Below are positions 3,376 through 56,834 of a DNA stretch of 64,000 bases, in pieces. Every line of letters starts with the position of its first letter. Within the stretch, counting starts at the first letter, position 1. Below the pieces are notes generated by a model. That model saw only the letters and a program-made list of their open reading frames with translations. It made no database searches and had not been told where the DNA came from. Made by a program: the position numbers and the translations under genes. This DNA is from Lepidodermella squamata (taxonomy: Eukaryota; Animalia; Gastrotricha), in the NCBI GenBank assembly GCA_047495785.1, contig JBLDXI010000013.1:434001-498000 (forward strand), in the 5' to 3' direction.

Positions 3376-3606
3376 ATAACACTACTGCTGAGCAACGTTT
3401 TCCTATAAAATGACGAAATTTCGTAATAAATAAAACGTCGATGAAACATTTGAGACTCAAATATCAAACCATGGTTTTCATTTTTTATTTTTATTTTCCG
3501 CAAATTCTAACTAATTAACTAATTAACAATCACCCCTGAACGCTGGAGTATATTTTCAAATTGAATCAATAATTTAAGGCTAAAGTTCGACAGTAAGTCA
3601 TCATTC

Positions 3607-11500: not shown

Positions 11501-11869
11501 ATATTTTGATTATTGGGAAAAAACAATACAAACCTGGCCGAAGTCCGTTCGAGGTATCATGTCGTCGAATTGGAACGACATGTTATTTTCGGACTTATTA
11601 TTTTGCATGAAGGGGGCCATTATTTCTGTCTTCAGCGAAGCATGACATTCCGGTGTCTGCTGTTGGTGCTGTTGTTGCTGCTGCTGCAGCCGGTGACCGT
11701 CATCGTCGGTCGTGCTAGTGGCTGGCAGGATTTCATGATGCGGGGTCGTCGAGTTCGAAACCGACGATTGCGAACTGGTGGCGACGATTGAGCTCGGTGT
11801 TGTTGTAGGAACTACTGCAGCCGATTTATTGCAATCGATAGCGAGCATGCACTCGCCAACAGTCACCAT
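8573..11869 (-). CDS. FoxF: Forkhead transcription factor FoxF (exons 11869-11534, 11480-11142, 11085-10193, 9883-9750, 8874-8573)
   Basis: Forkhead domain [20 protein letters not shown]...[19 protein letters not shown]|[22 protein letters not shown]...[17 protein letters not shown] is diagnostic of FoxF. All junctions are GT-AG and keep frame. The last two exons are Q/N/S-rich and less certain. Confidence 0.93.
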
Positions 11870-27100: not shown

Positions 27101-30100
27101 CTCTGGCGTAGTAATACACGCCTAATATGACCGGAAATCTATAATCGAGACGCGGCGGCGCAGTGTCTTGCCGGCTACTTTGCGCAATAAAGGAATCCTC
27201 CTCAAAATGCTGCATGTAATGGATTACTTTTTACGAACCGCGCTGCTAGTCCAGCAACGGAAGCCGGCGCGTCATCGTTTTCAGCTCGTTGTTTGCAGTG
27301 CGCGCTGTGTTACTAACTTCGCGAAAAAACGCGCGCCTCCTACTTAATTTTAGTATCGACTCGTTGTTTTCGACACGACTGACTTTCCTGTCTGCATTAA
27401 ACTCCCGCGGCGCCGACGTAGTATCGCCCCTGTTTCAACCAGGCCTGTTATTTTGTTGCGAATCTACTACGCCTAGTCTCTTATACTTGAATCTGACTCC
27501 GAATTCTTATTCGATCTAGTTATCTCGTCGCTTGCATACCGGAACATGCTGCTTATTCCCGGCACGAGTTTCAGATAAATTCTGGACTTGGTCGCCTAGT
27601 TTTTTACGGGCTGCTCTGCAAACCTTGTGCGCGTGCGTGCCTAGTCCTGCATTATCGTAATTATAGTTGTCACCTGTGCCAAGCATAAAACCAGCGTGTT
27701 TGCACAGTCAATAATTGATATGTTTTTAACCCCTCTCTTGCTCGTAGTAGTATAATTGGCTAGTGGTTAAGAAGCCATTATATTCAGTTATCTTGAACTG
27801 AAAAACACCTTGACATTTTTCTTTTCTCTAGCTCCTTCTGCCATAGCTTTTTTTACAAGTGCAGAGTTGTTTTATAGCGATCGATTCATGTTTCAGGGGC
27901 TGTTAATCTAAACTCGACCAGTCCAGCAGATCTCGACCACCGTGTTGGCACTGAACGTCGGTTTAGTGTCTTCAATTACGGCTCCGGGCCTCCTCCACCT
28001 GCTCTCAACGCAAAACGATACAAGAAAATGGCCGAAGCAGCGATGGAAAATAACGGCGGCGATATTGAAGCCGCAGAGCTGCTGAGCGCGACAAACGGGC
28101 GCATGGGCAGACGGCCCACCGATGGCAGTATCAGAAGCATTCCGTTTGAGGTTAATATCGACTGCGGTTTTTATATTGATCTTCATATTGATTTTTTTCA
28201 GGATTTTCATACTCAAATTTCGAAAGCACCTCTACCTGTTTTCTCGCAACTGGCCCAGTACATGGGCGGCATTCACCCGGCGGCGAAGGAGGGCGATGCA
28301 GGTGCCGAAAAGGCGTCGTCCAACGCCGGCCTCGGCACCCTCCTCGGCGTATTCTTGCCATGTATCCAAAATATTTTCGGCATCATGATGTTCGCTCGAC
28401 TGCCTTGGCTGACCGGCAATTCGGGCCTCATTGAAATGCTTATCATTGGTGTTATGTGTTGTGCGACGGTAATTTTGCGAAGCAATTTTTTATTTTATTG
28501 CTAAAATTTTTTGTTTACCCTCAGACTTTTCTGACCTCAATATCAATCAGTGCGTTGGCCACTAATGGCCGCGTTCCCGGTGGTGGCGCCTACTATATAA
28601 TTTCGCGAACCCTCGGCCCGGAAATAGGCGGTGCCGTTGGGTTCTTATTTTTTATCGGAAACGTGGCTGGTTGCGCCATGTACATAACTGGCGGCATCGA
28701 AATTCTGTTGATGTACCTGGCACCGCAGATAGCAATACCGGCTTTCGGACCCATCACCGAGCCGTCCAGTCTGTACAACCACTCCCGGCTTTACGGCACT
28801 ATCGCGCTCATATTCGTGTTCGCTGTAGTTTCTATCGGCATCAAATTCGTAGCCATTGCTGGTTTCGTCACCCTGGCTGCCGTCATTGGAACCATCCTGC
28901 TGGTTTTTGTCGGCATGTTCACGACGAACGAGTCCAACTCAAAGCTGTTAGTTTTAGTTTAAAATTTTGGTCTTGAACCTAATTTTTTTATTAATTTTTC
29001 CCAGGGTTTGTTTTGTTGGAAATCGACTGTGGCGCATGGACCGGGTTTACTTCAACGATGCCTGGTGTTGCACGAAGGCGCCGAAATGCCCGCAACCCAA
29101 CAACGGCACTGACAGTCCGTTATTTTCGTACTACTGCGGAAAGGATATTCGCAATACGAGCAGTCTTTGCTTGTTTTTCCTCAACACAAATACCTCAGTT
29201 GGCCCACAACCTGCCATTCCCGGCCTATTCAGCGGCGTCATTGTGGAAAATCTGTGGCCAGCTTATTCGACTGATGAAGGCGAAATTGCCGGCGCCCAGA
29301 CACTCGATAAAGAAATGCTTAGAAAAGACCCGAGTCTGTTGTACGGCAACCGCCAAGCCGGCGAAATTGTGACAGACATGGCGACGAGTTTTCTAGTCAT
29401 CATCGGCATTTTCTTCCCATCGGCCACCGGTATTTTAGCTGGTTCGAACCGGTCAGGCGATTTGGCCGACCCTGGCAAATCGATTCCGATGGGTACGATT
29501 GGCGCGAATGTCATCACGACAATAGTCTACGTTATCTGGATCGTAATTTTCGCCGGTTCCATGAAAGGTCAAGTTCTGAGAGATAAAATGGGCGAATCGA
29601 TGACTACAGCTGCTGGCGGGTCGCTAATGGCTGGCAACATCGCCTGGCCTCACCCGCTTGTTGCTCAAATCGGGTCGTTTCTCGCCACTATGGGCGCCGC
29701 GCTTCAGAGCTTGACAAGCGCGCCCCGTTTGCTGAATGCCCTGGCGAAGGATGACGTTATTCCGTTTTTGAAACCATTCGCGTATGTCACGAAGCGTGGC
29801 GAGCCGATCTACGCGCAACTCCTAGCGGCTGGAATTGCGGAGCTTGGCATCCTGCTTGGCACCATTGACTTGATTGGCCCGGTCGTGACGATGTTCTTCT
29901 TGATTTGCTACGCCGCGGTCAACTCGGCGTGTGCCATCAACTCGCTGCTTGAAACGCCGAACTGGCGGCCCCGTTTCCGTTTCTACCACTGGTCGTTGTC
30001 TGGGGCCGGTGTCGTCCTAGCCGTTATTATCATGTTCATGTCGAACTGGTGGCAGGCGCTCATTGCCATCGCTCTCGGCATCGGTATCTACAAATACATC

Positions 30101-31363
30101 GAGTACAAAGGCGCCGAAAAGGACTGGGGCGATGGCGTTCGCGGTGTCCAGATGTCGGCTGCCCTCGCCGCCATCCACCGCCTGCCCATCGATGATTCGA
30201 ACGTGAAGAGCTACCGACCTCAATTGCTGTTGTTCGTCAAGTCCGAGTTCGACGCAGAAACACAGAAATACGCACCCCAACCGATTGCTGATAATTTACT
30301 GGCGCTGACCCGCCAGTTGAAGGCTGGGAAGGGCTTGGTCGTACTTGGTAGTGTGATCGAAGGCTCTTTCCTAGACAAATCGGCTGCAGCCTCTGAGTTG
30401 CGTTCCGTATTTTTGAAACGAGCTGATATCAATAAATTGAAGGCAACACCTGTTGTCGTAGTCGCTCCGACCTCCGAAATCGGCTTGGCCACCCTGGTCC
30501 AGTCGACCGGGATCGGGGCACTTCGGCCTAACACCGTGCTAGCCGGCTGGCCTCGGTCGTGGAATGCCCAAATCACGGACGATTTGTCGGAAGGCTCGTT
30601 CCATCTGCTGCCGAACTTGCTGCGAGTGACAGCGGCCGCGGACATGTCGGCGGTTATCGTGCGAAACGCAGAAAAGTTCCCAACCGGCCGGAAAGACCGT
30701 ATGATGGGCACGACTGACATTTGGTGGATCGTCGACGATTGCGGCATGTTGCTGATGATACCGTACCTGCTGCAGCAGCACCGCATCTGGGCGCGGTCGA
30801 AGGTGCGCATTTTCGCCGTGACAATGCCTGGCCGGGGCGTCGACCCGAATAAAGTCCGCGATGCGTTGAAAGAGTTCGTCTACGACCTTCGCATCGTCTG
30901 CAGCGTCGACGTCGTTGAAACAAATGAAAGCGACGTTTCGGCCTACGTCTGCCAGCGTACGCTTACAATCGAGGAGAGGGCGAAGGTGCTGGCGGATTTG
31001 AAGGCGAAACGGGCGTCATCGCCTGAACCTGGCGCCGAAAGTCCGACCAAGGCCGGCAATTCGTTATCACCCCCTGCGACGTACAGCGGCGAGGAAGCGC
31101 GTGAGCTGGTGTCGAAGAGCTTGGCATCTCGAAACCTGGCCGAGAAGCTGCAGTCCGCGCACACGCTCAACCAGCTGATGCTTTCGCGGTCGTCGGAGGC
31201 CGATCTCGTCGTGGTGAATCTGCCGAAGCCGCCGAGCCGCGCCGAGGGCGATCTCAAGTACATGGAGTACGTGGACCTGTTGAGCGAGGGATTCGCGCGC
31301 GTCTTGCTCATCCGCGGCAGCCAGAAGCGGCCCGTAGTCACGACCAAGTTCGCCGATGACTGA
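24116..31363 (+). CDS. kcc: K-Cl cotransporter-type SLC12 cation-chloride cotransporter (exons approx. 24116-24278, 27897-28151, 28202-28468, 28524-28946, 29006-31363)
   Basis: LGTLLGVFLPCIQNIFG, SISALATNGRVPGGGAYYIISRTLGPEIGGAVG, FFPSATGILAGSNRSGDLADP, LQSLTSAPRLL, PNWRPRFRFYHW and YKGAEKDWGDG. The large Cys-containing loop after TM5 is typical of KCCs. Exon 1 joins exon 2 in phase 1 across a 3.6-kb intron. Confidence 0.93.
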
Positions 31364-34885: not shown

Positions 34886-35911
34886 ATGGGTAGTTTGACG
34901 GGTCACATGATTTCCGGCGGCTTGCTGGTCTTCTTCGGCCTATGGCACGTCTTCAACGTATTTTTAGCGTACTTCCGGGCGATGAAGAGTGGCCGCCAAT
35001 TTATGTCGAGAGCGGTGTGGCCAGCGCCTTGTTACCCCAACTCGCAATTCCCATTTGAGGCTATATTTAAGCTTGGCCTCGTCTTGCTATGGGGCACAAT
35101 CGAGTTTCTCGTCATCACATTGTAACTTGCGCGTCGAATCCATCTTAAATTCGCTGTTATACCAATTATTTTTCAGAGACAAAGGCCTGTATGGTCAACA
35201 GGGCCAGCATGGTTCGATGGAGTACCTCATCGCATCTACTGGAATCGTAGATTTCTTGGTCTACTTCAATCGCAACAACCGTTGGCCGTGGCTACCTAAA
35301 AAGGCCAACTACGGCTACACAGCGTTCATCTTTTTGCTCGAAAAATACATCCTAGCTAATCACCACCCAGACAAAATGGGCATGCATATGAACATCGAAG
35401 GAATGATGCACATGTTTTTAGTCGACATTGCTTATGCCACGGCTATTATGGTGGCTGTTGAAACTGTCTTCACTCACGTTTTTGGCGTTGCCATTCTTCG
35501 CGCCTTCACCTTGGTACTGCAAGGCAGTTGGCTTTGGACGGTTAGTCAGCATTTTTTAATAATTTAGAAAAATTTCGACTTTTCCTTATAGATCGGGATC
35601 GTTATTTACACCGACTGCTGTCACCTGAGCAGCGAGAGTACGGCCGATTATCAGCTTTTGGCTCTTTACTTCAGCTACAACGCTGTCATAACCTTGGTTT
35701 TCTGCTTCATAGTTGGTTTCTTGACACAGTAAGTCCTAATGCTACATTCAAGTTTCGATATAACTCATGATTGTCCTATTATAGCTTGGCGATGGGCTGT
35801 CCGCAACCTGCTTATACAATGATCGATGAGGAGAGCGGGCGGCAACTTAAAATGCGAAATGGCGATATTGCGTCATACACCAAGTTAACCTCTGAACCGT
35901 CGGACGATTAA
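34886..35911 (+). CDS. TMEM45: TMEM45 (DUF716) family membrane protein, 4 exons
   Basis: MGSLTGHMISGGLLVFFGLW start, QHGSME, His-rich NHH...EGMMHMFL and LVLQGSWLWT|IG. GT-AG introns keep frame to TAA at 35909. Confidence 0.88.
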
Positions 35912-40885: not shown

Positions 40886-42647
40886 ATGTTGCGACGAATA
40901 GCACTGGCTTTTGTGATTGGCATATCGGTGTCGCTGCAACCCGGCTATGCGCAAGACGGTAATGGACAATACTTTATAACATTTCAATTATCGTAGCATA
41001 TTTTAGTTGGACAATATTTTTAATTCAATTTGCCTTGTATCTTTTGACAGGTGACGCGTGCACGGTGCCAGCGAGTAATAAACAACCGTTGCCGAGCGAA
41101 TTTACCGGCCGCTCGAGCATGGTACAGGTCATGACCGGATCGCCAGTGCGTTGTGCCGGCAAGCTGACCCATTTCACCTTCGTGTCAACGAACAGCTACG
41201 TCGCTGGCGTCACTTTTTTCGTATGGCGCCCGTTCGGCCAGAAACCGCGCAGTCCGTTCTTCACGCCGGTTGGCACGGTTGAGTTGGCAGGGGAAACGTA
41301 TTACCGGCCCAATACATGGGTAAACGTACCCGTCAGCCCGCCGCTCGATGTGCTCGAGGGTGATGTTATCGGCCTGTATTACGACGATTGGCGACTCGAC
41401 GACTATTTCGCCTTCATCCCAACGTCGCCACCGCAGAATTATTACCGGCGCAATTCGAACTTGACCTACGCCGAGGTACTAGTGGCGGCCAAGTCGCGCT
41501 CAGAACTTGCGTTCGAGCTGGCTTCCAAGGGCATGCTAGACTTCAGCGAAGCTTCCAAAGACCAGCGGCATATTGCTCTTCAGGCACAAATAGAAGCCCC
41601 GACACGACTTACGTTGGCTAAATTTCGCCTCGGAATCTGTCAACTACCATCCGAGGCTGGCAATTGCCTGGCATTGATACCTAGCTTCTACTACGACGCC
41701 AACATGGGCGACTGTCGGCCGTTCATTTGGTCCGGTTGTGGCGGAAACATGAACCGGTTTTACTCGGCCGAAGAGTGCGCCAGTGTTTGCCAATCGCCGA
41801 TGATCCCACCAGCGTCCGATGGCAACACGTTCCGAGGCCAGCTTAGGCAACTGATGATCCTACAGCCGACTACAACTCGACCTACAAGGCTTCAGACGCC
41901 GATACCAGTGGCAACAACAACACGGGGGCCGACTACAACGACCAGTCGAACGACAATTCCTGCGCGGACCACGCCCTGGTTCCAGATTTTCTCCAAAGGT
42001 TCGACCCCCTATCGTAGCTTGGTCGTGATAGGCTTGCAGCCTGCTGGATCTAACGAGCCGAGCAAATTGCCGACGCCAACAAGTATTTCTTCATTTTCTG
42101 TGCTTCATCCTATTTAAAATGTGTTTCGATGAAATGACAGAATGCGTCGACTTGTTCCGGACCAAGCAACGCTGTGATCGAACTATCGTCCAGACCAAGT
42201 ACTTCTTCAATGCAGGCAAAAATGAGTGCGAGCCTTTCTTTCACTACGCTGATTGTATATCGTCTGGTAACATTTTCTCTTCCAAGTAAATGCCTTGCTT
42301 CAATTACCATCGCGTCCTCTTAAATTTTGATATGCTTTTCCCAACAGTGAAGAATGTGCGTTTCATTGCGGTGTGCTCGAGCGTGATCCTTTGTTACTAA
42401 CAAGGTAAGTCAACACTTTTGTTTTCTATTGTGTTTCATCTATAGAACCGGTAAATATTTGCCTTGGCCGAAAATCTCTGCCAAAAGTTGAAATTAATTG
42501 AATAACTTATTTGCTCATAAAAACTCCAAGGGATTGGCCTTTTGTGTAAACATTTGACCGTACATCACTTTTTTTATTTTCAGAATCCGAGATCCTTACC
42601 AATCTATCGTCGGTGTCCCTCAGATGATGTTCGCAGACGCGCCGTAA
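40886..42647 (+). CDS. Secreted cluster paralog A: signal peptide - unassigned domain X - canonical Kunitz - Thr/Pro linker - atypical Kunitz (exons 40886-40958, 41051-42082, 42141-42285, 42348-42404, 42584-42647)
   Basis: MLRRIALAFVIGISVSLQPGYA signal peptide; Kunitz CQLPSEAGNCLALIPSFYYD...CRPFIWSGCGGNMNRFYSAEECASVC. All junctions are GT-AG and in frame. An alternative stop at 42406-42408 is used if the last intron is retained. Confidence 0.88.
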
Positions 42648-43774
42648 AAAATGAGGCCACTGACAATTCTTTCGCACCTGGCGTTCTCAATTCTTTTAAT
42701 CATAATATCATGAGTGAATTGCATGCTATCCTTGCTTTTCTACGATCAAATTATTTAATTGAGGCTTTTCAAAAAGCTACTGGTATTTAGAGCCTTTCAG
42801 CGGCTAAATTAATTATATTTTTTTATATCATTATTTTCTCATTCTCATATTGACCGTATTCACGAGACATGAAACTGCCAACCGATGATTTTTCCGACCT
42901 TATCAGTGTAAAATATTTTCGAGTGCTCGAACACTCTAATTTTCCTTAAAATAGTCCGCCGTCGGAAAAGGTTGAACTTGAATAAAAAAGCAGTTCGTTC
43001 ATTCATTTAAGTCGGTTTATATATAAATATCTCAGCTTTTGCCAACACAGAGGGGACAAAAAATACCGGTAACTGCGGCTTCAAGTATATATAAGTAAGT
43101 GTATAAATTTGTTCACGCTCGTTCTACGCCGTAGCAGTGAAAACAACGGCGAGGTGCGAACACCGCAGGTATAAATAGATAAAACTGCAGCGCAAAGCCG
43201 CTTTGAGAATAACAAAAAAACAGGTTTCATGTTGGCGCATGATTTACATATCTAGGAGAAATCAGAAAGACGCGTTGAACGAAAAAACACTTATTTGACG
43301 TCTACGACCTGACTTATACTCGGCAAAAAACGTGACGGCGGCTGTTTGCGGGACATGGGGTGTTACATAGTGCAATGTATGAGAAATTGAAAAACATGAA
43401 AATTTCAAATAAATTGATCATATTCGCTGTGTGTTCAGGCGGCAAAAAGTGTCGCTAGAGTTTGATGAGCAAAAATAGACAACAGACGTGCCGCCGCCGC
43501 CACAAAGGTAGATATAGCTACGAGACGTCGTATAGCAATGATTAAAACAAGCAGCAAATACTTATTGCCATTAGACATACCAAGCGTGAATAATCGTCAA
43601 CAAAAATGTGGCAGCAGAATATAAAAAACGTTTGCTTCTTCGTGACGGGGCTCACGGGTGCAAAATCTTCAGCTGCTTTTTCCTATAAGACAGACAGCTA
43701 ATGCCTTATTAGCTACTTTAACATGCCTCTTTTCTTTAGCAGGTTTCTAGTTAATGATATCACATGGTTGTAAC

Positions 43775-45566
43775 ATGATTGCACTGTTGCGCCTCTCCAT
43801 CGCGATCGGCGCGCTCGTACCCATCAGCTATCAGCAGGCTCAAGGCTCATACCCTGACTGTAATGAATAATGTGAATTCTAGTATAATGATTTCATTTCC
43901 TTCATTTTCAGCCTGCATCGCGCCGTCGATTCGAGCACTTTCCAAGGAGTTCGAATTTCGCTCATCGATCTTTCAATTATTTCCGAAAATTCCCATTTTG
44001 TGCAACGGCTATGTTACAAAATGGGCATTCTTATCAAAAAATCAAAATGGCACTGGCATGTATCTATCGGTTTGGAGAGCGACAGACAATCCTAATGTAT
44101 TTCGGTACGGTTTGTTCGGTTTTTTTCCTATTAGCTCCTATCCATCAAATTGAGCATCCTTCAACTTGAACTTGGAGCTGCGAGTTGCGACTGAAAGCTG
44201 ATTGCTGAATATTGAAGTCGCACTCAAGCTGTTGGAAAAATGAATTTCCTAGATAGAATTATCTGCTGTAGCAAGGGTTGCCAGGGTTGGTATAGGTGAA
44301 TTGGTACGTAGCTACTATATCAACTTCTAAATGAGCACACTTTTAGTTATCATTATTCTCAAATAAAATCACATTTATAATTTTCACGAAAATTTCTCCA
44401 CTAAATCCGTGGAATTATTTAGCATCGATCTCAAAAATAATCAATTATTACGAATATATAACGAAGTGTAATACCTATGCATCCATTTTTATAGACAAGT
44501 TGGAGTTACTCGAATCGACAACTTTACCGTTGCGACAGACGCATGGTCCGAGTACATCGTTCCGAATCCTTTCCCAGTTCTGGCCGGCGACATTCTCGGC
44601 CTGTACTACCAGATGTGGCAGGTTTTGTGGCCTTACTCTGGCCATGTGCCGGTGACAACGCCCTACTCGAAAGCGCCGAAAGGTCTCGAGCAAAACTACG
44701 GCGACGCACTCGTGCTCAATTATGACGCCTCTGATTTAGCAAGAATGGTCGGCAGTGACGGCGTGCCGCAAGTAGACATGTCCTCAGCTGCTAGTGTTGC
44801 GAGATTCCCGGCAATTCAAGCCGTTGTAGACCCGGCTTGGACACTATCATCTTCCACAACTTCCACTACGACGACTACGACAACGACAACGACTCCAATG
44901 ACGACGATGAGAATAATTACGACTCGACCGACGACTACGACGACTACGACTTTCAGGCCTCTGCCCCCAATCACGACTTCGACTACGTCAACTACCACAA
45001 GATTGACGCCGACCACCACGGTGACTACAACGCCAACGACTCAACTGCTGACTACAAGCACGACTACAATGCCTCCAACAACGGTTACAACGCCTTCAAC
45101 CACGACTACCTGGATGCCAACTTTCGAACTGACAACTCCGGAGCCGCCAACAACTCGCGTTACAACGTTGCTAACAACTACAATCCTTCTTCCGGTGACG
45201 CCGCAGCCATCGGCTGTGCGGAATCCACGCCGCTGCCTGAGTCCATTCAAGACACAGGGTCGCTGCAACTACAACAAAGTGACGCTGCGTTGGTTCTTCG
45301 ACACGTCGACGCAGTTGTGCGAAATGTTTTGGCACTACGACTGCGTTGTCTCGTCGAACATTTTCATCGGGCGCGAGTCGTGCGAATTCCACTGCTGCGA
45401 TCTCATTTCTGGCCGTCTGTCAGCCAACGATCTCGACAAACTGCCGCCGTTGCCGTCTGGTGCCGATGTTAGCAACAACGAAGTCATCGCTAATTACGAC
45501 GAGCAGACCGGCTTCGTGCGCGCCGAACTTAAAACAACACCACCGCCTTCCAATGCGATGGCGTGA
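43775..45566 (+). CDS. Secreted cluster paralog B: signal peptide - domain X - long Thr-rich mucin stalk - atypical Kunitz (exons 43775-43859, 43912-44104, 44495-45566)
   Basis: MIALLRLSIAIGALVPISYQ signal peptide; SCIAPS...ILCNGYVTKWAF...GMYLSVWRA...FR|QVGVT...FPVLAGDILGLYYQMW. C-terminal CLSPFKTQGRC...RWFFD...CEMFWHYDCVVSSNIF...CEFHC. Confidence 0.88.
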
Positions 45567-46956
45567 AGATGCACATTTCATGCTTTTTAGTTTCACTCCT
45601 AATAGAATTTTTTACTGTCTTATACAACGTCGCATTATTACACGCTTTTTGTCACCACCAGATGTTAAGGCAATAATAATTTTTCGAGCTGCCGAATTTT
45701 TTGAGAAAAATAAAGTTTTTCGGTTGAAACTTGTCCTCATCCGAAGCGCATCCTTTTAACATGTTTTTTTTAGCATAATACAACGTAATAGAAAAAATAG
45801 TCTTAACTGAAGACGAGCAAGTGCAATGGCCGGAATGTAGAATTTCTATCATAATGTCCGTTGTTTGGTGCAACTACTTCTGCGGAGATACAGGTCGGCG
45901 GAAAAAACAATTTCCACCAACGAGCAATTATTTTTTGGCGTAAATAGCGCCGGTTAAATCTGAATTTTTTACAACACCAGGGTAGAGTTTTCCGATGGTC
46001 GAATTCGAGTTTGGTGGTCAAAGCTTGGGCAAATACGGCGGTTATTTACTTGACCGCTGGCGATGCGGAGGCACGCTGCCGCCTGCTAATTGCACGTGAA
46101 GATGGGCCGATATACTACATCCTGCAGTATTGGCAAAAAAGGCGCACAATTTGGTGCAGCGGACGCAGTGACCACATCGCGTGGTGATCGGGGCAGCGCG
46201 GCGATTCGGCGACACGCTGCCACTTGTTATTTGCGGACGATCCAGCGCAACAGCGATATAGAGACTCGAGGCGTCACACAAGTCGGCGTCATGTACAAAG
46301 CAAATAACATCGTCGACGACGACGACGGCGCCGCGCTCGCCTGCTGAAATTTCGCCGCAACAGGTAGCGCGCCGATTTTTTAATGACTGCGCGCGATGCG
46401 CCGGCGCGTATTTACGCACGTGTACGCCTGTACCAGCGTCTCTCAAATTGTCGCCGCGCATGGCGATGGTGGAGGTGGTGTGCGAGCCTGAAGACGCGCG
46501 CGCCGACGTCAAGTGCATTACCATTTAGCCGCGATTTGTGTTCAACATATCATATACACAAGATAGGTGTAATAAAATATCGAAAGAGCAAACATCGAGC
46601 GCGCACTTTCAGCACTGCCCACAGCCTGCATGCAATACAGGTAACAACGTTATTAGGTCTGCAAAATTAGTGCTTTTCCACGCGCGTTTACTCTCCAGAT
46701 GCACCCACTCGTCAAATAGCTCCTCTGCCTGCTACTGATATTGATACTTTGCGAACTGTTCCTTCTCCGCCTGCGTTCCTTCGCATATCCGCGCGTGAAG
46801 TAGGTCACAATAACATTAGCGACGGCTCGGTACAGCGTTACACGCCGTTGCCACTACTAGCAGGTATCTGTCTGCCCACTCATCCGAGCTCGGCTTTTTT
46901 CTACCCTACCGCAGTGAGTTCGTCGTCGCTGGTTCCTTAATTTATCACTCGGCGAC

Positions 46957-49210
46957 ATGCTTATCAGCCCATCCTCATCGCCAACTGCTAGCAATAGGCA
47001 GTGGCGCCAGTTCAGTGCCACCTTAATCGCTGCAACCCTACTCATCGACCACGCAACCCTCGCCCAACGGCAAGCGGGTAAGAGTGTTCAATTATTTTCC
47101 AATTATTTTTGTTGATAAAATATACTGCTGATTAGGAGATTAATTAACTCAACAGCATTTTCTAAAGATTTTCCAAACTCAAGAAATTGTATAGCCAAGC
47201 TGAAGCAGTTAATGGCTGTTATTAGCAAGATGCTACAACTAGACCTTAGTTTCAACTTAAGGAATTTTAGAAATATATCTTTCGACTGCATAATTCTTTC
47301 GAAAAAATCAGCATGATTCATGATGAAAATTGCGTTATCAATGCCAGGGCTGGGATATCAGACTAAACGCGATGATTATTGGTCTTTTCCTATATTAGTA
47401 GATTAGGAATGCTCAAGTTCAGTACATAGTGAGTTCTCTCGTTAATACGGCTGGTTAATCAGCCATAAAACCCTTCTGTTCAGGGTCGATTGCCACAAAA
47501 AAGTTCCCATGGCTCACTGAATAGGAGATTTTCACTGGTTTCTTTTTCATATTCAGGCAACAACAATAGAGGAAATAACGGCCGTGTTCAGGCGTGTTAT
47601 CAGCCGGTCGATTTCGGCAACTGTCAGATGACAGCGTTGCGGTACTTCTACGACGCGAATCTTAATTCATGTCGAGTTTTTATCTACGGCGGTTGCGATG
47701 GCAACGACAACCGCTTCGACAACCGAGAGCAGTGTACGCGTATCTGCAACGCCGGGCCCGAGTTGCCCGCGGAGTCGAATCTGCCGCAAAACTTCCCAAC
47801 CTACAACGACGCCGGCTCAGCAGTATGCTCGCTGCCGGCCGACCCAGGAACTTGTACAGATACTAATCTCATCCAATATTACTACGACTCGGTCACCGAT
47901 TCTTGCCGGCTATTCGTTTACGGTGGATGTGGTGGAAACGCAAATCGCTTCAGGACAAAGGTTTGAATCCCATTTTTCTTTTATTTGTCAAGAGAAGATC
48001 TAAAATTATATAATTTTCGATATTTAGCTTACTTGCCAAGTCGCGTGTGGTGGCTCATCGGATGAAGAAACGACACCAGCTATGACTCAACGGCCGCAAC
48101 CTCAAACATCGCCTGGTCGAATCACCCCACCGCGGCCGCCGACGCCTCCGAGACCGACGCTTGTGCCTCAAGTCTCCACGAATCCTCCCCTTCAAACCAC
48201 CAGGAACCCCTGTTAGTTTGTTTATTTTACCTCAAGTTCCAAGTTTACGGGTTTTGTTTTAGATTGCCAAGTTCCGGCTCGCCAGCTTACGCTTAAGACG
48301 TTCAATTACCGCACATCATTCTTGCACATTTTCCCGCAAATCAACATCACGTGCTCGGGTATCATACGTTCGTGGTCCTTTATCCCACGCGTGGCCGTCG
48401 CCGACGGGCTCTATCTGGCAGCATTCCGCGCCAAAACACCTCAAGTAAACGCGACGACGTACCTACTTGTTGGCATGACGCCAATTTTCAACTACAAAGT
48501 GAATCGCAACGTTTGGAACGACTACGCCGTACCTGAGAACAAACAATTCTCAGTGCAGGCCGGCGACGTGTTAGGGCTGTTCTACGAGAATTGGGACATC
48601 ACCGATGACATGTCAGTCGTCGCGATGGCGGACAAGTACTCCCCAGACTACGATATGCTCAAAACATCGTCCGAGTTGTTGGCACACGTGCAGCAACGCG
48701 GCCGCGAGGGTGTCGTCTACGACATGAACTATCAAGGCTACTTGGACATGTCGCTGAGCGTGCGAACGTTCAGATACCCGGCGATGCGCGCGAACATCGA
48801 ACCTGGCGCTCGAGCGTTGCCGCCGACTTCAACGCTGCCTCCGCCTGATCCGAATGCCGGCCGTCTGCCAGTCGTTAACACCAGGCAAACAACAACACCA
48901 CTGGGTGGAAATTCACCTGGTTTGTCATGAACTCTACGTTTCACTGTTTCGAAATGTATTTGAATTTTTTTTACCAGCTTGCTTGGACGAATTTCAAACA
49001 TCGCAAACTTGTCTGGATAACGCGCTACGCCGTGGCGTTGACTCGCGAGTGTTCAAGGCGCGCTGGTTCTTCGACATCACTGTCAAAATGTGCGCCATGT
49101 TTTGGTACGTGCCCGACTGTTACCGGTCGGCGAATCTCTTCGAAACGGAATACGACTGCCGAGCGACGTGCTACGGCTACATGGCAACAACAACGCCAGG
49201 CGATCTCTAG
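46957..49210 (+). CDS. Secreted cluster paralog C: leader - 2 canonical Kunitz - Pro/Thr linker - domain X - atypical Kunitz (exons 46957-47077, 47557-47960, 48028-48211, 48263-48919, 48978-49210)
   Basis: Two FxYGGCxGNxNRF Kunitz domains; YCQVPA...ITCSGIIRSWSF...GLYLAAFRA...LVGMT...FSVQAGDVLGLFYENW. Phases are consistent at every junction. The exon 1 leader is a weaker signal peptide. Confidence 0.86.
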
Positions 49211-49925
49211 TGCAGCTGCTCTACCGAAGAAACTTTCGCATTTTTTCGACAAATCAATCGTAGATCTTCTTTTGTCACATCATCATCTACATTTGTTTCG
49301 ATTGGCTTGTAATATAGTTTTATTCGCTCCGTTTTCGCTGCAATGCTGGCGCAGAGTGAAGGCAACGAGATAGTCACATAGAGCCCATATTTCTATTAAG
49401 CTACTATCAAATTGTCTGCGGACAAGTTCCTCTTTTTTACTCAAAGTAATTATATCGTGCAAAAAATAAAGTGTTTTTTATGAGAAGAATTTAAAATGCG
49501 AAAGATGATGCAAATTATTATATAAACGAATGAATTTTTTATTCAGTCCGAATCGAAAAATCAAATAAAAATTATTGAACAATTGTTGTAAAAATAGCCA
49601 TAAATACGGTTGTAACGCTTTTTTATTCACCTAATGGCTTACAAAACTAAAATTTGTCTCTACACGGAATAATTGTTTTTACGTTATCATGAATATATTA
49701 TAATGCAATTACTTTCGCCTTTACTCACATCAATATCATTCGAAATTTTCGTCTCTTTCTTTGAAGAACAATCTGTGTTTCAGTGTTTAAAAGTTGAAAA
49801 ATAAAAGCTAAAGAGATGTCTCGCGCTGCGCTATTTATAACTATTAAAAAAAGCTTTCAGTATGCATACATCGGTATCGATAAAAATTCGCTGATGCGGA
49901 GGTGATGGAAAAATCTCGAGACCGA

Positions 49926-50535
49926 CTACTTCTCACCAACTGGCATGCCGTGCTGCAGCACGTCCTTGATAACTGATTCGATTTGATCGTGTAGCTGTTG
50001 CCGCATTTCCTGCTTTTTCACCTGTTTCAACCACAAAAAGAAAGTCGTTGGCTCGCGGCCGCAAAGACCGGCCGAGTGATAGAACTTGGGGCAGTCCATA
50101 GTTGATTTCAAACGTGTTTGCAACATTTTGGCAATGTTCCTCAGCATCTTCGTCCGGCCAGCTTTACCCTTACCTGTTGTCAATAATATGTATATAGGAT
50201 GGATTGTTATTGGACTAATTAGTATTACCGTAAAGAAGGCGGGATAGATCCTTTCGAGACACTACGTCTTCGTGGCCATCAGCTTGTTCGTGGTTGTCGG
50301 ATGATTTTTCAGAGTGCTCCTGGTCTGCTAATACTTTATTCTCGGATTTCTGCAATAGTTCAGCCGACTGTTTTTTCTGCGAAAATTTAATGCCTCCAGA
50401 ACGTACGAGAAATTCGAGTTTTTTTGATAGCATGCCATTGTCGTTGGAATTGGCTGCTTTGTCGGCGCGAACCAGCACAGCCGAGAGACAAGCCACGACA
50501 CATGCAATGTATAAATATAGCGAGAATGATTGCAT
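49926..50535 (-). CDS. Small secreted protein (184 aa), possible peptide precursor (exons 50535-50229, 50173-49926)
   Basis: Signal peptide MQSFSLYLYIACVVACLSAVLVRA. A 55-nt GT-AG phase-1 intron joins the two ORFs. Contains RK-DLSRLLY-GK and MDCPKFYHSAGLC-GR. Confidence 0.75.
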
Positions 50536-52365
50536 CTTTCTGCGCCCACTTCAAAAGAGGCTACTAAAAATCGGTGGTATAAGCTCACAGTTTTGCTATA
50601 GGCTGACACCTAGGGAAAAATGAGAATATTTTATTTCTAAAACCTGTAGATTGCCATCGTGTTGTTGTGATAATTATAATTTTGCGGAGTTGTGAACTCG
50701 TAGTAGATGGCAAAAATAAGATTCACACATGCGATGATCGGAAGAGGAAGTTTAACGCGCTTAAATTGCGCTGATAAGTCATTCTTAGCGGCACAGACAA
50801 GAGCCTCTGTCCGAAGAAAAAAGTATAAAAGCTGTTAGATCTCATAACCAAGCGCACGCTTCATTTGAGCTCGTATCTTCTCCATCCATCGCCTCGCTAC
50901 TTCCTGACGCGCCTTCGCCCACTCGAATAGAGTAGGTAATAACTGCTAACAGCTTTTTATGGCGAAGTGTGTATGGCAAATTGAATTTCAAACTCTTGAA
51001 CATACAAATTGATTACTGATTTTAACTTCGTCAAGTTGCGCATAAGGTAATAACGCGATAAAAAAAATATACCTGCCGAAGAAAAGAAAAAACAATTATC
51101 GTTGAAAGCTGTTAGTTTCGCAGCATTGATATTTAATGGGCCGTCGAGTCACCGAGCTATCACGTCAGCATAGAAACGCCTACTCAAAATGGCATTCCCG
51201 TTCTTATTAGCTATAAGGGCTTCTTCCGGGTGGAATTTTTCAATATAATTTTGTATGACCACTCAAAGCCCTAGCTGTAATTGAGAATTACGCGCTGGAT
51301 AAGCCGCCTTTGTGCCGATAAATCGCTTCCGGTAACCTGGCTGGTTTTAGCCTTGATTGGCCAATGAGTTGATCTTGCTTGTAATGAGTTTATCCTGCGA
51401 TTTAAAATCGACTTGTAAATCCTGATGGGATCAAGTTCCTGATTCAAAGACAAAAAAGAATACATAGCTACGCCCGATCGTACGGGTTCCAGAGGCCTCG
51501 AAAAATAAGGATATACGTATCGGCGTTTTGCAAGTATAATTTTCCTGATCAGCAATTTTTTGGCTTTTGGAAGGGCAAACGACTACAAACGTTGTTTTAA
51601 ACCGTATAAGATGCTCACTGATTTGCATATCAGCGATTTTGAACACGCTCAAGTTCACGGCACTTCAGTGCAATTATTCATCACTCCGAAACGTTCCACT
51701 AAAAACTCGTCCTCCGGCAGAAAAGCATATTGATCTGAATGAAAATCTACTGTATACACTCAAAGTTTCCGTCATAGTATCTGGCGACCCTATCGAAAAC
51801 GATTCAATTAATCGCTGTGAGTATCCTGTTCATAATACGTTTGATAGGACGATATGCATACGCTGCATTGCATATAATTTTAAGCATAGGTATATTGAAA
51901 ACATCTGTCATCAACTTGACCTAAAGCGCCATTTTGCACAGCCACGATGGCACCGCCCGCCCACGTTGTGTGCCTTTCGTTGAAATTCAACACACTATAC
52001 GCTGAAGTATCATCATCATCATCACCGCCTGCGCAAGATGAGTAAGTGTACGGCGCGTGGTTGCTGCCAAGAAGAACGCATGGGTGTGGAACTCGATGAC
52101 GTCTAGGTACACGTGTATCGCTGGAGGCAAACGCGTTGCGCATACCTACCTATCTGCGCGCTCTGTATGCGCAACGTGTGGTGTACAAAGAAGACACGTG
52201 TTTGAAAACATTTGCAATGTTATTGAAATTTTTCTGAAGCCTACGCCGCTCACGTTCACTCGTTGTTATCACTCGTTTGAAGCGACGCCTTGTCGATAAA
52301 GACAACAACTCATCGTTTTAGTAAACACATTACTGCTAGAATAACCGGAATCGAGCTAAAAAATC

Positions 52366-53962
52366 ATGACTACAGCCGGTGTTCGATTTCTACTCGTATC
52401 ATTTATTGCAATTATCCAAGTTTCAGCTCAAACAAAGAAAAGTAAATTTCAATCAACATGTTTCAATTCGTTTTAAAAATATCCAAATTCACCTCCCAGA
52501 TCTCTGCTCGCTGAAGCCAGACCCAGGACCATGTTCTGGCGTTTCGATGCAGTATTACTACAGCTCTTCAAAGCGCCAGTGCATACAATTCTTCTACGGT
52601 GGATGTTTAGGCAATGGCAATCGATTCGACTCAAAGGCCCGATGCGAAGCCGTTTGCATGCCGCCGAAGATCGATGTAGAAGAACCTGAGTTTTATGAAA
52701 AATCGGCTTTCGCTGACGTTGTAGCAAACGTGGATGCTTATCAATCGTTGTCAAGTAAGTACATTTCGATTGTCAATTCTATATTGGGGGAAATTTGTTA
52801 CTCAATCAACAGGTTGTACTGCGCCAAGTAACTACTTGTCGACAACATCTTCCCAATATTGGATGCGAAGTTCGTTCTTCCACGTTTTTCGACAGCTGAA
52901 GGTCCCGTGCAATGGCGTTGTGGTCAAATGGCAGGCGATCTCACGCGTTAACCAACTAGACGGCCTTTACTTGACCATCTGGCGGCCGTTGCCAACTAAC
53001 AAACTGATGTTTAAAATGGTCGGCATGACAAAGGTGACGAAGCTAGCCGTTACTCCTAACGTCTGGACTGATATTCCGGTCAAAGATCGCTTCCCAGTTT
53101 CGGCGGGTGATGTTGTCGGATTTTTCTACGACAGTTGGCTGACAACCGATGCGTCAACTTCTATTCCGTTGATGCCGGGCAGCAACAATTACGATCCATC
53201 GACCGGATTCGTTTCAGATGAAGCTTACGTTACTCAGCTCCAAGCTTCGGACATAGTCAATTCGACTAGTGGTAAATTAGCCTATTATCCCTTTTTGCTG
53301 ACTATAAAATGTCATCCTTTTTAAGGAACTGTCGACCTAAGTGGAGCTGTCAAGGTATCACGAAAGCCAGCTCTGGCCGTTTTCGTCGATCCGACATCAT
53401 CAGACTCGCCAGCTCCGACCCAGAGTCCCAATACCGTCACAAATAACACGCCGAGAAATACCAACCCTAATACCTTGCCGACCATCTTTAGTCGTGGCAC
53501 TACCAGCCCAATCAACAACAACAATAACAATAACAACGGGAAGAATGAAAGTAAGATACGGCGATAAAATCAAATTCTCATCCAGTTTGACCTACACTGA
53601 ACTGTTTTAAAATAGATTGTCTCGATTCGTTCCGAATGGCTGGGGCGTGCAACTACGACATCAATGCCTTTAAAACTAGATGTGAGATTTGAAATTCGTT
53701 GTTTCTCCTTACAATTTGTTGCCTCTGCTTTTAGGGTACTTTGATCAACCAGACGGCCGTTGTGAAATGTTCTGGTATTACCCGGATTGTGTTAGCTCTT
53801 CAAATATTTTCCAAACAAAGTGAGTTTACAAACAACCAATGCAAATGTCGAATTTATTTGTTCAAATTATACTCGCGCAGGGAAATCTGCGAAATGAACT
53901 GTCGGGCATATTTCAATGTTTCCTACCACCTGGATGAAAGCAAATGGAAACAGCAATATTAG
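52366..53962 (+). CDS. Secreted cluster paralog D: signal peptide - canonical Kunitz - domain X - Thr/Asn/Pro linker - atypical Kunitz (exons 52366-52441, 52500-52754, 52813-53271, 53326-53550, 53616-53681, 53735-53819, 53881-53962)
   Basis: MTTAGVRFLLVSFIAIIQVSA signal peptide; Kunitz CSLKPDPGPCSG...FFYGGCLGNGNRF; VPCNGVVVKWQA...GLYLTIWRP...MVGMT...FPVSAGDVVGFFYDSW. All six introns are GT-AG and in frame. Confidence 0.88.
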
Positions 53963-55184
53963 GCTTGTTTTAAATGTGGCGAGAGTTTGGCAATCTGCAG
54001 AAATCAATCATATTAATCCAGTCTCATTGTTGAAAGTTGAATCCTGTGTGTATAATATTGTGTCAATGATGATATTGAATTCATACCGAGAATTTGTCAG
54101 TTTGAATAATAAAAAAGGAACAAGTCGCCAGGAGAAGTCCATTTTCAAGTTCACTTCAGCATGCGATGTGGTTTGCGTTTTCGACTTATTTCAGGTTTAT
54201 GACAAGAGATCGTATTTGCTTTTACTGGCCGCGCAGAAAAATGTCTTTTAAACAAACAGAACAGGAAAAAATAACTTGAATTCGCGCAACTTGTTAGCTC
54301 ATTGTTTATTTAAAATTTAAAACTTCCTGAGCGGCCGAGTGAGCGCCGACTATGTGCGTGAGCCAACAATCGCTATTTGTTGTTTGTTATTTTAGAGCCA
54401 ACAGCACGATAATCGGCTGCCGCACCATTGCGAAAAACGTAATTTAAATGTTTTGGGACTGTGAAAAATCTTGGTTCAACACTGGCCGATTCCAGGCCGT
54501 GTTTTTGAAGTGTCTCCTAGGCGCGCGCTTGTTATTTTGATTATTTTCATTTCACACTGGCGTTACTGTAGAAAGGTTATTAAAAATTGAGCGCAGCGCC
54601 AAAAATGAGAGAAAACCACCATGTTAACAACAGACAACAGCTTTTCCGCTGCTCGCACGTCCCTTGAAAAATCGGCGGTAGCATTTTTAATACAATTTTT
54701 GTAATATAATTACCACCGCCGCTCGCCGTCAAAGTACAAACGGCGGGCCGACAATAATTGCGCGAATGTTATACTTAACACGTGGCTTTTCATTTGCCAT
54801 TGAAGCCCGATACTGGTATTATACTGCCACCGAGTTCCTGCCTTGCGTGTGCTTCGCGACACTAGCTCAACGTATTGTTGTTTTTTATTTGAACAACTGT
54901 CTCATTACGCAGGTGCGTAACAACAATTGACGTAACTGAGTTACATGTTTTTAACGAGCGCCTATACGTTTCAAGTTAATTACCTACTCGCTTCGAAATT
55001 GAAGTTTGTTTACTTTGCGCGACGTGCATAGAGCTATTGCACAGCAATTCTTGGTGAGAGAATCGTCGCAGTCTTACCGAAAACAATGAATACCCGCGCA
55101 TTTTTTTCGCACTATGAACTTCTTTAGAAATTTTTAACATCTGATTTGTCTCAGGAATTTTATCGAAATATCTTAACAACAATC

Positions 55185-56534
55185 ATGTCATTACTCGCCG
55201 CCCTAAGAATATTACTCTTCGTCTGTGCCACTGTTAACATCATCAATGGCCAGAGTAAGCTAGTTAGCTTTTCAATATCAACATGAAGATTACATTTAAT
55301 TCTTTAAAGATTCCTGCGTTGTACCATCGCCGCTTGAAGATCAATCTCTGTTTACCCTGCGAAGGTAACTACTTGAAGTTGGGATATATAAATTATTCAG
55401 ATTTATCAACATTTTATAGCTCTTTGCTGCAAGTTTACACATCGCTAACGATACCATGTAACGGGTCAGTGGTATCGTGGCAATTCGTTCCACGGGTTGC
55501 ACAGATATCCGACTTGTATCTAGCGGTGTTTCGCCAAATGAAGCAGAGCTTGCCCTACTTCACAATGGTGGGCTACACGAAGGTGCAAAGCTTTACAGCT
55601 CCTTACGTCAACAAATGGGTCAGATTTCCGGTAGCAAACCCGTTCGACGTCGCGAAAGGCGATGTTCTAGCGATTTTTTACGACAACTGGCAAGTTCTCG
55701 ACGCTGGCGCTTCTATTCCAGTAACCATGCCGCCACTTGGTGGGTTGACTTACGTTGCTAGACATGACTTCAACTCCATCAATCGCGAGATCACTTCGAA
55801 CAGCCAAGGGATACTGGATTTGACCTTAGCCGAAAAAACGATACGGCTAGCTGCTGTTCAAGCCGAAGTTTACAACGGAGCAACTACAACTTCAACTTCA
55901 ACGACAACTACAACAGCTTCAACAACGACAACGACAACGGCCTCTACAGCGACTACGACGACACCACGTTCGACGGCTTCAACGACAACTACGAGAACAT
56001 CCTCGTCGACTACGACGAGGCCCACGACAAGCCGGACGACGGCAACCCAGTCAACTACGACGTTCATTACGCCATCGCCTCCTGACTACAACGGCAACTG
56101 GGACTACAACGAATTCACGGAACCTTCGACCACCCCGACGACGCGACGAACATCGACCAGGACAACAACGGAGCCTGCAGCGTACACTACCACGCCAGCT
56201 TACATGCGTATTTCTGAACAGATTTCATGATTCTATGCGTTATTTCCTGCGTTAAATATTAGGCTGCCGACAGAGTGTTCAGTCGATGAATGCCTGTAAA
56301 ATTATGTACTACGAAGAGAAATGGTTCTTCCGACCCGAAATCGGCGGCTGTCAACTCATATGGTGGTTTCCTTACTGCATGCAGGATAATGGCAACCTCT
56401 TCCAATCACGGTAAGTTTCTTTGAAATATTATTCAACTTCGCTATTTTTGCAACATGATTTTAGCGAGGAGTGTGAACTAATTTGCGCTCGTTACTTGAC
56501 TTACAAGCCGATGGCAAGATTGCGATTTCACTGA
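55185..56534 (+). CDS. Secreted cluster paralog E: signal peptide - domain X - Thr-rich mucin stalk - atypical Kunitz (exons 55185-55254, 55310-55364, 55420-56207, 56263-56410, 56465-56534)
   Basis: MSLLAALRILLFVCATVNIING signal peptide; SCVVPS...IPCNGSVVSWQF...LYLAVFRQ...MVGYT...FDVAKGDVLAIFYDNW. C-terminal CRQSVQSMNAC...KWFF...CQLIWWFPYC...NLFQSREECELIC. Confidence 0.88.
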
Positions 56535-56834
56535 TCAACATAACATGAGTGATTTTCGAAACAATCTGTATCATATGAGATCAAGATTTTTCTAATTTTA
56601 ACAAATTTATTTCACTAAAAAATCAGTTGAAACCAATATTGGTGTAACTGAGATGTTACGCGCATAAATATTTACGGACTTTGATATTGTTCAAACCTTC
56701 TTGTAGTCAGCTCGATCATTGCAGATGACATTTTAATTTCGAAAAATTCTTAAAATTCGCACTTTTATTTTGTTTGCCTTTGCCGTTGTGAGAAAGTGTG
56801 AAAAATAATAAAAATAACGAGAAAGAGTCAGCAT

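Follow-up and report, generated by a model that had tools for sequence, protein, structure and literature searches.

The question raised by this locus of the gastrotrich Lepidodermella squamata is what kind of protein is made by five neighboring genes, each joining the same unassigned domain (X) through a Thr/Pro-rich linker to a Kunitz-like domain at the C-terminus, and whether that terminal domain still works as a protease inhibitor. The window analysed, i.e., the whole stretch of DNA of 64,000 nt, also encodes canonical Kunitz domains in three of the five genes; these are designated K below, and the atypical terminal domain is designated Kat.

Gene models and conservation of the array

Five co-oriented genes with GT-AG introns were recovered on the + strand, their starts and stops coinciding with those of the initial annotation and their ORFs of 456, 449, 532, 415, and 376 aa (A to E) being uninterrupted. 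Gene A (40886-42647, 456 aa; exons 40886-40958, 41051-42082, 42141-42285, 42348-42404, and 42584-42647), assembled by splice enumeration and translation, encodes a leader, X, a canonical Kunitz domain, a Pro/Thr linker, Kat, and a tail. Gene B (43775-45566, 449 aa; exons 43775-43859, 43912-44104, and 44495-45566) encodes a leader, X, a Thr-rich mucin linker of 129 aa, Kat, and a tail of 56 aa. Gene C (46957-49210, 532 aa; exons 46957-47077, 47557-47960, 48028-48211, 48263-48919, and 48978-49210) starts with an atypical leader, followed by two canonical Kunitz domains, a Pro-rich linker, X, a further linker, and Kat. Gene D (52366-53962, 415 aa), for which splice enumeration gave seven exons (52366-52441, 52500-52754, 52813-53271, 53326-53550, 53616-53681, 53735-53819, and 53881-53962), carries a leader, a canonical Kunitz domain, X, an Asn/Thr/Pro linker, and Kat. 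Gene E (55185-56534, 376 aa; exons 55185-55254, 55310-55364, 55420-56207, 56263-56410, and 56465-56534) consists of a leader, X, a Thr-rich mucin linker of 121 aa, and Kat, with the junctions picked under the guidance of its ortholog P0001. The spliced translations thus reproduced the proposed architectures X-K-Kat (A), X-Kat (B and E), K-K-X-Kat (C), and K-X-Kat (D), and scanning the window with X, K, and Kat profiles returned no copies beyond these five loci.

Comparison of the exon models with RNA-like contigs verified five junctions, establishing that genes B and C are transcribed and spliced. Introns 43860-43911 and 44105-44494 were confirmed for B, and for C those at 47961-48027, 48212-48262, and 48920-48977. 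Transcripts of the two genes occur together in one RNA-like run, and of the proposed co-expression this much was seen. Exon 1 of gene C received no coverage from these contigs, and is homologous to the signal-peptide exon of its ortholog. In A, D, and E, splice consensus and gap-free co-linearity with orthologs support the junctions, with alternative splice choices at 42082/42141 of gene A. The mRNA of gene B carries a leader-like 24-nt 5' addition joined at acceptor 43738, a 24-mer that a literature search found in no publication; a polyA signal lies at 45709, and the last RNA contig stops just past it at 45725. Because the gap between B and C shows zero RNA depth from 45839 to 47430, and because gene B has this 5' addition and an RNA end beyond its polyA signal, the array was concluded to comprise five separate genes, as had been proposed.

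In metagenomes, a related organism was found to possess one ortholog per paralog in the kept order B-C-D-E, and its loci carry separate ORFs rather than one fused gene. The ortholog of gene A on L010 contains X, K, and Kat, the spliced product of gene D aligns gap-free to its ortholog on L008 and L009, and residues 1-374 of gene E match P0001 end to end at 54%. For the ortholog pairs, pN was 0.20-0.42 vs a saturated pS of 0.72-0.82. The cluster is therefore real, old, and under purifying selection, since 1:1 orthology, shared gene order, and a pN far below saturated pS all point the same way. The paralogs are very divergent and yet intact, with X identities of 22-33% among A, C, D, and E (the intron-split X of B being omitted from the alignment) and all five ORFs uninterrupted, in line with the first description.

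These data bear on the alternative that the locus is mis-modelled, its exons belonging to a single long gene or to an array of decaying pseudogenes. The uncovered exon 1 of gene C and the ambiguous junction in gene A would fit such a view, whereas a leader and a stop are present in every unit, the uncovered B-C gap, the 5' addition of B, and the end of its last RNA contig separate neighbors, another organism keeps the orthologs as separate ORFs, and nonsynonymous change is far under saturated synonymous change; this alternative is largely refuted and is considered extremely improbable.

The products are predicted to be secreted. Hydrophobic stretches occur at the N-termini and nowhere else, so no membrane span is expected, which agrees with the original assignment. 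The leader of gene C is atypical, with a long N-region and weak hydrophobicity, and aligns with the canonical signal peptide of its ortholog. The linkers of B (63 Thr in 129 aa) and E (51 Thr in 121 aa) are mucin-like, and short spacers (31-49 aa) rich in Pro, Thr, and Asn take their place in A, C, and D. Long Ser/Thr/Pro-rich stretches of low complexity, which define mucin-type linkers, were thus recognized by sequence, and O-glycosylation of the secreted products would be expected.

Fold and distribution of domain X

Domain X has no named family, as the initial annotation surmised: the copy of gene A (41053-41601, + strand) scored 279 with the X profile and gave no Pfam match, and no Pfam family recurred among 140 diverse X domains, even at E <= 1. 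Searching PDB sequences with the X profile returned nothing below E 0.25, and by sequence X is not a member of CBM32, F5/8C, F-lectin, PHR, or Lectin_like. Its own signature is clear, C-x-G-x4-W-x-F ... R ... LVG ... G-D-x-x-G-x-x-Y. In a language-model search, the nearest named families were the Lectin_like and PHR clusters.

The X domain of gene C (48265-48807, + strand) was modelled with AF2 from the 140-sequence alignment (pLDDT 91.3, pTM 0.88). The closest structural matches were phage tail-tip and decoration domains, at Z 9.0-9.7. Below them came the Cwp84 lectin-like domain (8.4), carbohydrate-esterase modules (7.4-7.7), PHR (6.7), F-lectin (6.3), and CBM32 (about 5.8), all to be read with the knowledge that Z values up to 9.7 are only at or slightly above what is usual for unmatched models and that about 8 is near background. 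The phage matches included jelly rolls of tail, baseplate, and capsid decoration, which span Z 8.4-9.7 when taken together with the Cwp84 domain. Foldseek with the same model returned nothing at E <= 0.001 against PDB. The model confidently predicts a jelly-roll beta-sandwich of the lectin or carbohydrate-binding type, and since the Z-scores are near background and the Foldseek search was empty, this lectin-like reading does not go beyond the level of the fold. Domains of the same jelly-roll class, such as PHR and TNF-like ones, also serve protein-protein contacts.

X is not confined to this locus: it occurs in at least 191 cluster representatives, among them proteins of nemerteans, molluscs, sea stars, and hemichordates, and look-alike clusters are labelled Porifera and Annelida. 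The domain is found alone or in tandem, with up to 21 matched stretches, and is fused to Sushi, to astacin-ApeC-CUB-Kringle-C-lectin, or to PAN in clearly extracellular mosaics of many phyla. X is consequently an extracellular domain family outside Pfam coverage with a confident fold, and its representatives are numerous enough to start a family entry of its own, with which many animal proteins now listed as "uncharacterized" could be annotated.

X and Kat had been described as an obligate pair. This stands within the five-gene family and fails as a general rule, because most X proteins elsewhere lack a Kunitz partner: a Kunitz-like domain was present in 7 of the 150 best X proteins. Two distant X proteins, P0015 and P0038, likewise end in atypical Kunitz-like domains. 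Word-indexed protein searches with the X of gene E, the X profile, and the Kat of gene B returned almost only orthologs and therefore say nothing on distant Kat partners.

Remodelling of the terminal Kunitz domain

The Kat of gene A (42143-42369, + strand) is split by intron 42286-42347 and shows the Cys spacing 9/17/8/12/3 with P1 Asp, and that of gene B (45234-45395, + strand) lies in a single exon with P1 Asn. Against PF00014 (cut-off 21 bits), whole domains were scanned for B (27.9 bits) and C (31.2 bits), the first part of A scored a marginal 21.2 bits, and the domains of D and E are intron-split; the orthologs P0004 and P0010 reached 32.6 and 32.8 bits. All five Kat domains have six cysteines, spaced 9 / 17-19 / 7-8 / 12-13 / 3 in A, B, D, and E and with a Cys2-Cys3 loop of 26 residues in C, which is compatible with 1-6, 2-4, and 3-5 pairing (canonical spacing 8/15/7/12/3). 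The AF2 model of the gene B domain (pLDDT 91.6) contains strands 18-25 and 30-37 and helix 49-56, and the top 50 PDB matches listed were all Kunitz (TM 0.63-0.77). The P1 position is occupied by Asp in A, Asn in B and D, Leu in C, and Lys in E, and none of the five keeps the Gly-Gly before Cys4, which has given way to Tyr-Asp, Ala-Asp, Pro-Asp, or Pro-Tyr. The combination that marks a canonical inhibitory loop, P1 Lys, Arg, or a large hydrophobic residue with Gly-Gly before Cys4, is absent from Kat. These results bear out its description as an atypical Kunitz domain, with the Kunitz fold and a Pfam match where scanned and with remodelled protease-binding loops. Two JGI metagenome loci with a degenerate WFFD...C.MFW DNA pattern were dismissed as chance matches without a Kat reading frame.

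The remodelled domain is strongly conserved. In four of the five ortholog pairs, Kat is 75-89% identical and exceeds X, which stands at 61-71%; the Kat of B is 89% identical to its ortholog, and that of D finds an 83% match. The canonical domains, in turn, score 66 bits (gene A) and 110 bits (the gene C pair) and retain GGC or SGC. Their P1 residues are Leu in A, Gln and Thr in the first and second K of C, and Ser in D, and the orthologs have Met in the K of A and Phe in the first K of C.

We favor, with modest confidence, the view that the tandem genes form a conserved family of mosaics that are secreted and probably carry many O-glycans. Each combines X, a Thr/Pro-rich spacer, and a remodelled C-terminal Kat, canonical Kunitz domains being added in A, C, and D. 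X, of a sugar-binding-type fold, would anchor the protein by binding a glycan or another protein in mucus, a secretion, or the extracellular matrix, and the Kunitz modules on the mucin-like stalk would then act locally. The canonical domains may inhibit proteases with a specificity other than for trypsin, and Kat is more likely a conserved binding module than a standard inhibitor, a role that it has probably lost.

A competing view is that the secreted proteins are dedicated to inhibiting serine proteases, be it in defence, in the control of digestion, or in the manipulation of prey or host. Every Kunitz domain, Kat too, would then be active with an unusual specificity, and X would be no more than an exosite or targeting add-on. 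It draws on the Pfam scores of the canonical domains, their intact GGC-GN-N-F core, and the P1 Leu, Met, and Phe of the gene A domain and the two orthologous domains; P1 Leu in the K of A and in the Kat of C would be compatible with real inhibition of the chymotrypsin or elastase type. However, B and E lack any canonical Kunitz domain, the secondary-loop Gly-Gly is missing from every Kat, and the canonical domains of C and D have Gln, Thr, and Ser at P1, where the Kat of A, B, and D has Asp or Asn. According to work on BPTI P1 variants, Asp and Asn are reportedly very poor P1 residues. Dedicated inhibition is hence considered unlikely.

The strict layout of the family bears on another proposal, self-assembling matrix polymers in which X binds the Kat of a second molecule, so that molecules join head to tail into chains with mucin stalks as spacers. 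All five paralogs, and the orthologs of A, B, C, and E that were read to the end, have a single X and a single C-terminal Kat with a spacer between them; the high conservation of Kat despite the loss of inhibitor hallmarks and the termini of P0015 and P0038 would also suit such chains. The rarity of Kunitz partners among X proteins elsewhere speaks against them, and the proposal appears quite improbable. The same low weight is given to its broader form, in which X would be a new ancient metazoan lectin-type family locked here to a non-inhibitory Kunitz domain, the polymers building a specialised extracellular gel or matrix. The five old paralogs lend themselves to the study of how Kunitz domains are repurposed, and the overall architecture is another invertebrate secreted mosaic, a useful finding rather than a surprising one.

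Comparison with known secreted mosaics

Oikosins, the house proteins of larvaceans, are secreted matrix proteins of mosaic build that carry glycans; known domains are lacking in many of them, and the animal that makes them employs a spliced leader. The leader-like tag of gene B matches the Oikopleura dioica leader weakly (score 31, shuffles 21 +/- 3, with 5 of 2000 reaching it), a resemblance that prompted an oikosin reading of the family. This reading, at most a lead, was set aside as unsupported, given the weak leader similarity and a house-proteome paper in which Kunitz domains are unmentioned (PMC3390340). No publication naming both oikosin and Kunitz was found in a literature search, and a broader search found nothing relevant.

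Among galactose-binding-domain-like jelly rolls, X has 3-11% identity to its structural matches and its own signature. With CBM32, F-type lectin, the Cwp84 lectin-like domain, and PHR, it shares the beta-sandwich over 102-145 aligned residues at Z 5.7-8.4, i.e., near background at best.

AMBP, HAI-1/SPINT1, papilin, and WFIKKN are secreted or membrane mosaics that likewise place a ligand-binding or matrix module and Kunitz domains behind one signal peptide, whereas none of them is known to have X, a mucin spacer with a terminal remodelled Kunitz domain, or such a gene cluster. Relative to Kunitz/BPTI domains (PF00014), six cysteines, the N-x-F core, and the Kunitz fold are common to K and Kat, and Kat differs by one additional residue between Cys1 and Cys2 (9 vs 8), a longer Cys2-Cys3 loop (17-26 vs 15 residues), the lack of Gly-Gly before Cys4, and the prevalence of Asp or Asn at P1. 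The best structural match of the Kat model was the C5 domain of collagen VI alpha3 (1knt, TM 0.72), a reported non-inhibitor, with no sequence relationship past the domain family. In both cases a secreted protein of matrix type ends in one Kunitz domain; the partners of that domain are VWA, collagen, and FN3 domains in collagen VI alpha3, whereas they are X and a mucin spacer in the family described here.

Gene models and transcription of the cluster

Searching a six-frame translation against Pfam revealed canonical Kunitz matches and weaker Kunitz matches at the places where the initial annotation had put canonical and atypical Kunitz domains, and the ~170-aa stretch called domain X was without any match. 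Gene models were built by enumerating GT-AG junctions that kept the frame open, with P0001, a 351-aa ortholog in a public assembly, guiding gene E. Uninterrupted open reading frames of 456, 449, 532, 415, and 376 aa were obtained for the five plus-strand genes A (40886-42647), B (43775-45566), C (46957-49210), D (52366-53962), and E (55185-56534), whose starts and stops coincided with those first proposed. Most introns measure 51-92 nt; three are longer, at 179, 390, and 479 nt. The proposed architectures were also recovered exactly: every product ends in an atypical Kunitz domain, preceded by X and a canonical Kunitz domain in A, by X alone in B and E, by two canonical Kunitz domains and X in C, and by one canonical Kunitz domain and X in D. 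Hydrophobic segments of A-E were only N-terminal, in agreement with the claimed lack of a transmembrane segment; the leader of C is weak, yet alignable with a canonical signal peptide directly upstream of the first Kunitz domain of its ortholog. The spliced products of A, D, and E could be aligned gap-free with their orthologs from another organism, and profiles of X and of both Kunitz types matched only these five loci in the 64-kb window.

One public run was RNA-like, with contigs skipping introns at GT..AG and leaving introns and intergenic DNA uncovered. Its contigs bore out the exon models in part, skipping the two introns of B and three introns of C where the models put them. The depth of this run was zero from 45839 to 47430, and therefore B and C do not form one transcript. 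The last RNA contig of B ended at 45725, just past a polyA signal at 45709. One contig of the run, within 43714-43775, carried 24 non-genomic letters directly before 43738, where the genome displays a pyrimidine tract with an AG acceptor, and the ATG of B follows 35 nt downstream; this tag looks like a trans-spliced leader. Of the words sampled from 47500-56600, 47% were present in the run; about 42% of this interval is modelled exon sequence of C (from 47557), D, and E, so the share is inferred to be about what these exons would give with untranslated regions counted.

Lengthened by the acceptor AG and by 7 letters, which come from a second, reverse-complemented loose end at 43831, the tag showed a weak alignment to the Oikopleura dioica leader given in PMC6883708, scoring 31 versus 21 +/- 3 for shuffles, of which 5/2000 reached the score. 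For A, D, and E, too, acceptor-like sites precede the ATG by 30-60 nt.

Orthologs, selection and neighbouring loci

Metagenome scaffolds from one sample series, representing a related organism, contained one ortholog for each of the paralogs A-E, with B then C on L003, C then D and E on L008, and D then E on L009. The A ortholog lies on a separate scaffold, and unrelated genes were found upstream of the B ortholog. In a maximum-likelihood tree, every X domain of the window grouped with its own ortholog with 94-100% support, and the branches between paralogs were much longer than those of ortholog pairs. Synonymous sites were saturated (pS 0.72-0.82), versus pN of only 0.20-0.42. The earlier view of an old cluster under selection is upheld by this one-to-one pairing and the low pN: the duplications are older than the divergence of the two organisms, and purifying selection has acted on all copies since.

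In the window, D is split by six introns (52442-53880) and E by four (55255-56464), all of 53-65 nt, and their orthologs on L008 align as single unbroken stretches (3538-4662 for D residues 28-391; 6863-7900 for E residues 1-374), indicating that introns were gained or lost to a strong degree between the two organisms. The 390-nt intron of B and the 58-nt intron of C are likewise missing in the orthologs.

A DNA-like sequencing run, X2, differed from the window by about 2%. In the Thr-rich repeat of B (44845-44918), it lacks 6 nt at 44871 and carries clustered substitutions, so the linker varies in sequence and length between individuals or strains. Contigs of this run matched up to 46322 and 47557 and then continued into 255 unlike letters, which may reflect an insertion or structural variant involving the upstream region and first intron of C; 47557 is the first base of C exon 2, beside the acceptor. 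Between C and D, the minus strand has a 106-aa ORF (50215-50535) whose N-terminus resembles a signal peptide and which matches no Pfam family. The neighbours across 742-35567 are ordinary animal genes, including a cNMP-binding protein (2690-3130), a forkhead gene (11124-11531, minus strand), a CC2D2A-like gene with a CEP76 peptidase-like domain (14848-19212, minus strand), an SLC12 cotransporter (28028-31363), and a DUF716/TMEM45-like gene (34989-35567).

Distribution and fold of domain X

A profile built from four X domains and scored against 1.84 billion representatives matched 191 proteins at E <= 0.001, 58 of them at E <= 1e-10. The domain features the signature C-x-G-x4-W-x-F, followed by Arg, LVG, and G-D-x-x-G-x-x-Y, and 140 diverse copies matched no Pfam family at E <= 1. 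It occurs singly in some proteins and in tandem in others, with 21 matched stretches in a scallop protein of 4303 aa, and its partners include Sushi, astacin-ApeC-CUB-Kringle-C-lectin, PAN, and HRM domains. Named examples come from Lineus, Haliotis, Babylonia, Ylistrum, Patiria, and Glandiceps, each annotated as "uncharacterized" or under a loose name, and look-alikes in the ESM Atlas belong to unnamed clusters labelled Porifera and Annelida. In other phyla, X sits in uncharacterized proteins of very large size (P0032, P0081, P0109, P0026, and P0047): this scallop protein, a sea-star protein of 3207 aa, a hemichordate 'polycystin-1-like' protein, and gastropod astacin-ApeC-CUB-Kringle-C-lectin mosaics.

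AlphaFold modelling with a 140-sequence alignment predicted an all-beta sandwich with two short helices (pLDDT 91.3, pTM 0.88), for which Foldseek gave no significant match in the PDB. With an exhaustive structural aligner, the model resembled jelly-roll domains of phage tail, baseplate, and capsid-decoration proteins (Z 8.4-9.7), the Cwp84 lectin-like domain (Z 8.4), N-terminal parts of polymer- or carbohydrate-esterase chains (Z 7.4-7.7), a PHR domain (Z 6.7), an F-type lectin (Z 6.3), and CBM32 (Z about 5.8). Considering that these values are only modestly above background, the predicted structure is called a lectin-like jelly roll at the fold level and is placed in no named family.

The terminal Kunitz domain and the candidate role of the family

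The terminal domains of B and C scored above the Pfam Kunitz cut-off, which that of A reached marginally and with its first part only. An AlphaFold model of the B domain from six sequences (pLDDT 91.6) showed Kunitz secondary structure; the top 50 PDB matches listed were all Kunitz domains, the closest among them being the collagen VI alpha3 C5 domain. Unlike canonical Kunitz domains, the terminal ones have one extra residue between Cys1 and Cys2, a longer Cys2-Cys3 loop, and a replacement of the Gly-Gly before Cys4. Their identity between orthologs is 75-89% in B, C, D, and E, above that of X in the same pairs; the domain is functional rather than decaying.

A rival reading takes A-E as a family of true protease inhibitors. 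The terminal domains also depart from canonical Kunitz domains at P1, which is Asp, Asn, Leu, Asn, and Lys from A to E. Asp and Asn at P1 are reportedly very poor for trypsin- and chymotrypsin-type enzymes in work on BPTI variants, and we therefore infer from the sequences that most of these domains would not be standard inhibitors.

X and the terminal domain had been proposed to form an obligate pair. Inside the family this holds, with one X and one terminal atypical Kunitz domain in 5/5 paralogs and in the four orthologs with a readable C-terminal end, those of A, B, C, and E, and with an 83% match to the terminal domain seen for the D ortholog; beyond it the pairing fails, since among the 150 best X proteins only 7 have any Kunitz-like domain. 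A Pro/Thr spacer followed by an atypical Kunitz-like domain also closes two X proteins of more distant relationship, and the gene for one of these (P0015 type) lies ~9 kb from a CC2D2A-like gene in the related organism (scaffold L011). This sixth, more distant type has no counterpart in the window. The pairing bears on another rival, that the products would assemble into head-to-tail polymers through putative contacts between X and the terminal domain.

Collectively, the results point to secreted glycoproteins with a putative ligand-binding jelly roll and Kunitz modules. In the preferred reading, they are candidate matrix- or mucus-associated proteins, in which an extended and probably O-glycosylated stalk would hold the jelly roll and Kunitz modules apart and X would anchor the protein to a glycan or protein ligand. 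No described family containing X, nor any paper on the architecture of X, linker, and terminal Kunitz domain, was found in a literature search of incomplete coverage. Secreted mosaics of Kunitz and other modules are well known, as in AMBP, HAI-1, papilin, and the C-termini of collagens VI and VII; what is new here are the X domain family and the conserved terminal Kunitz subtype.
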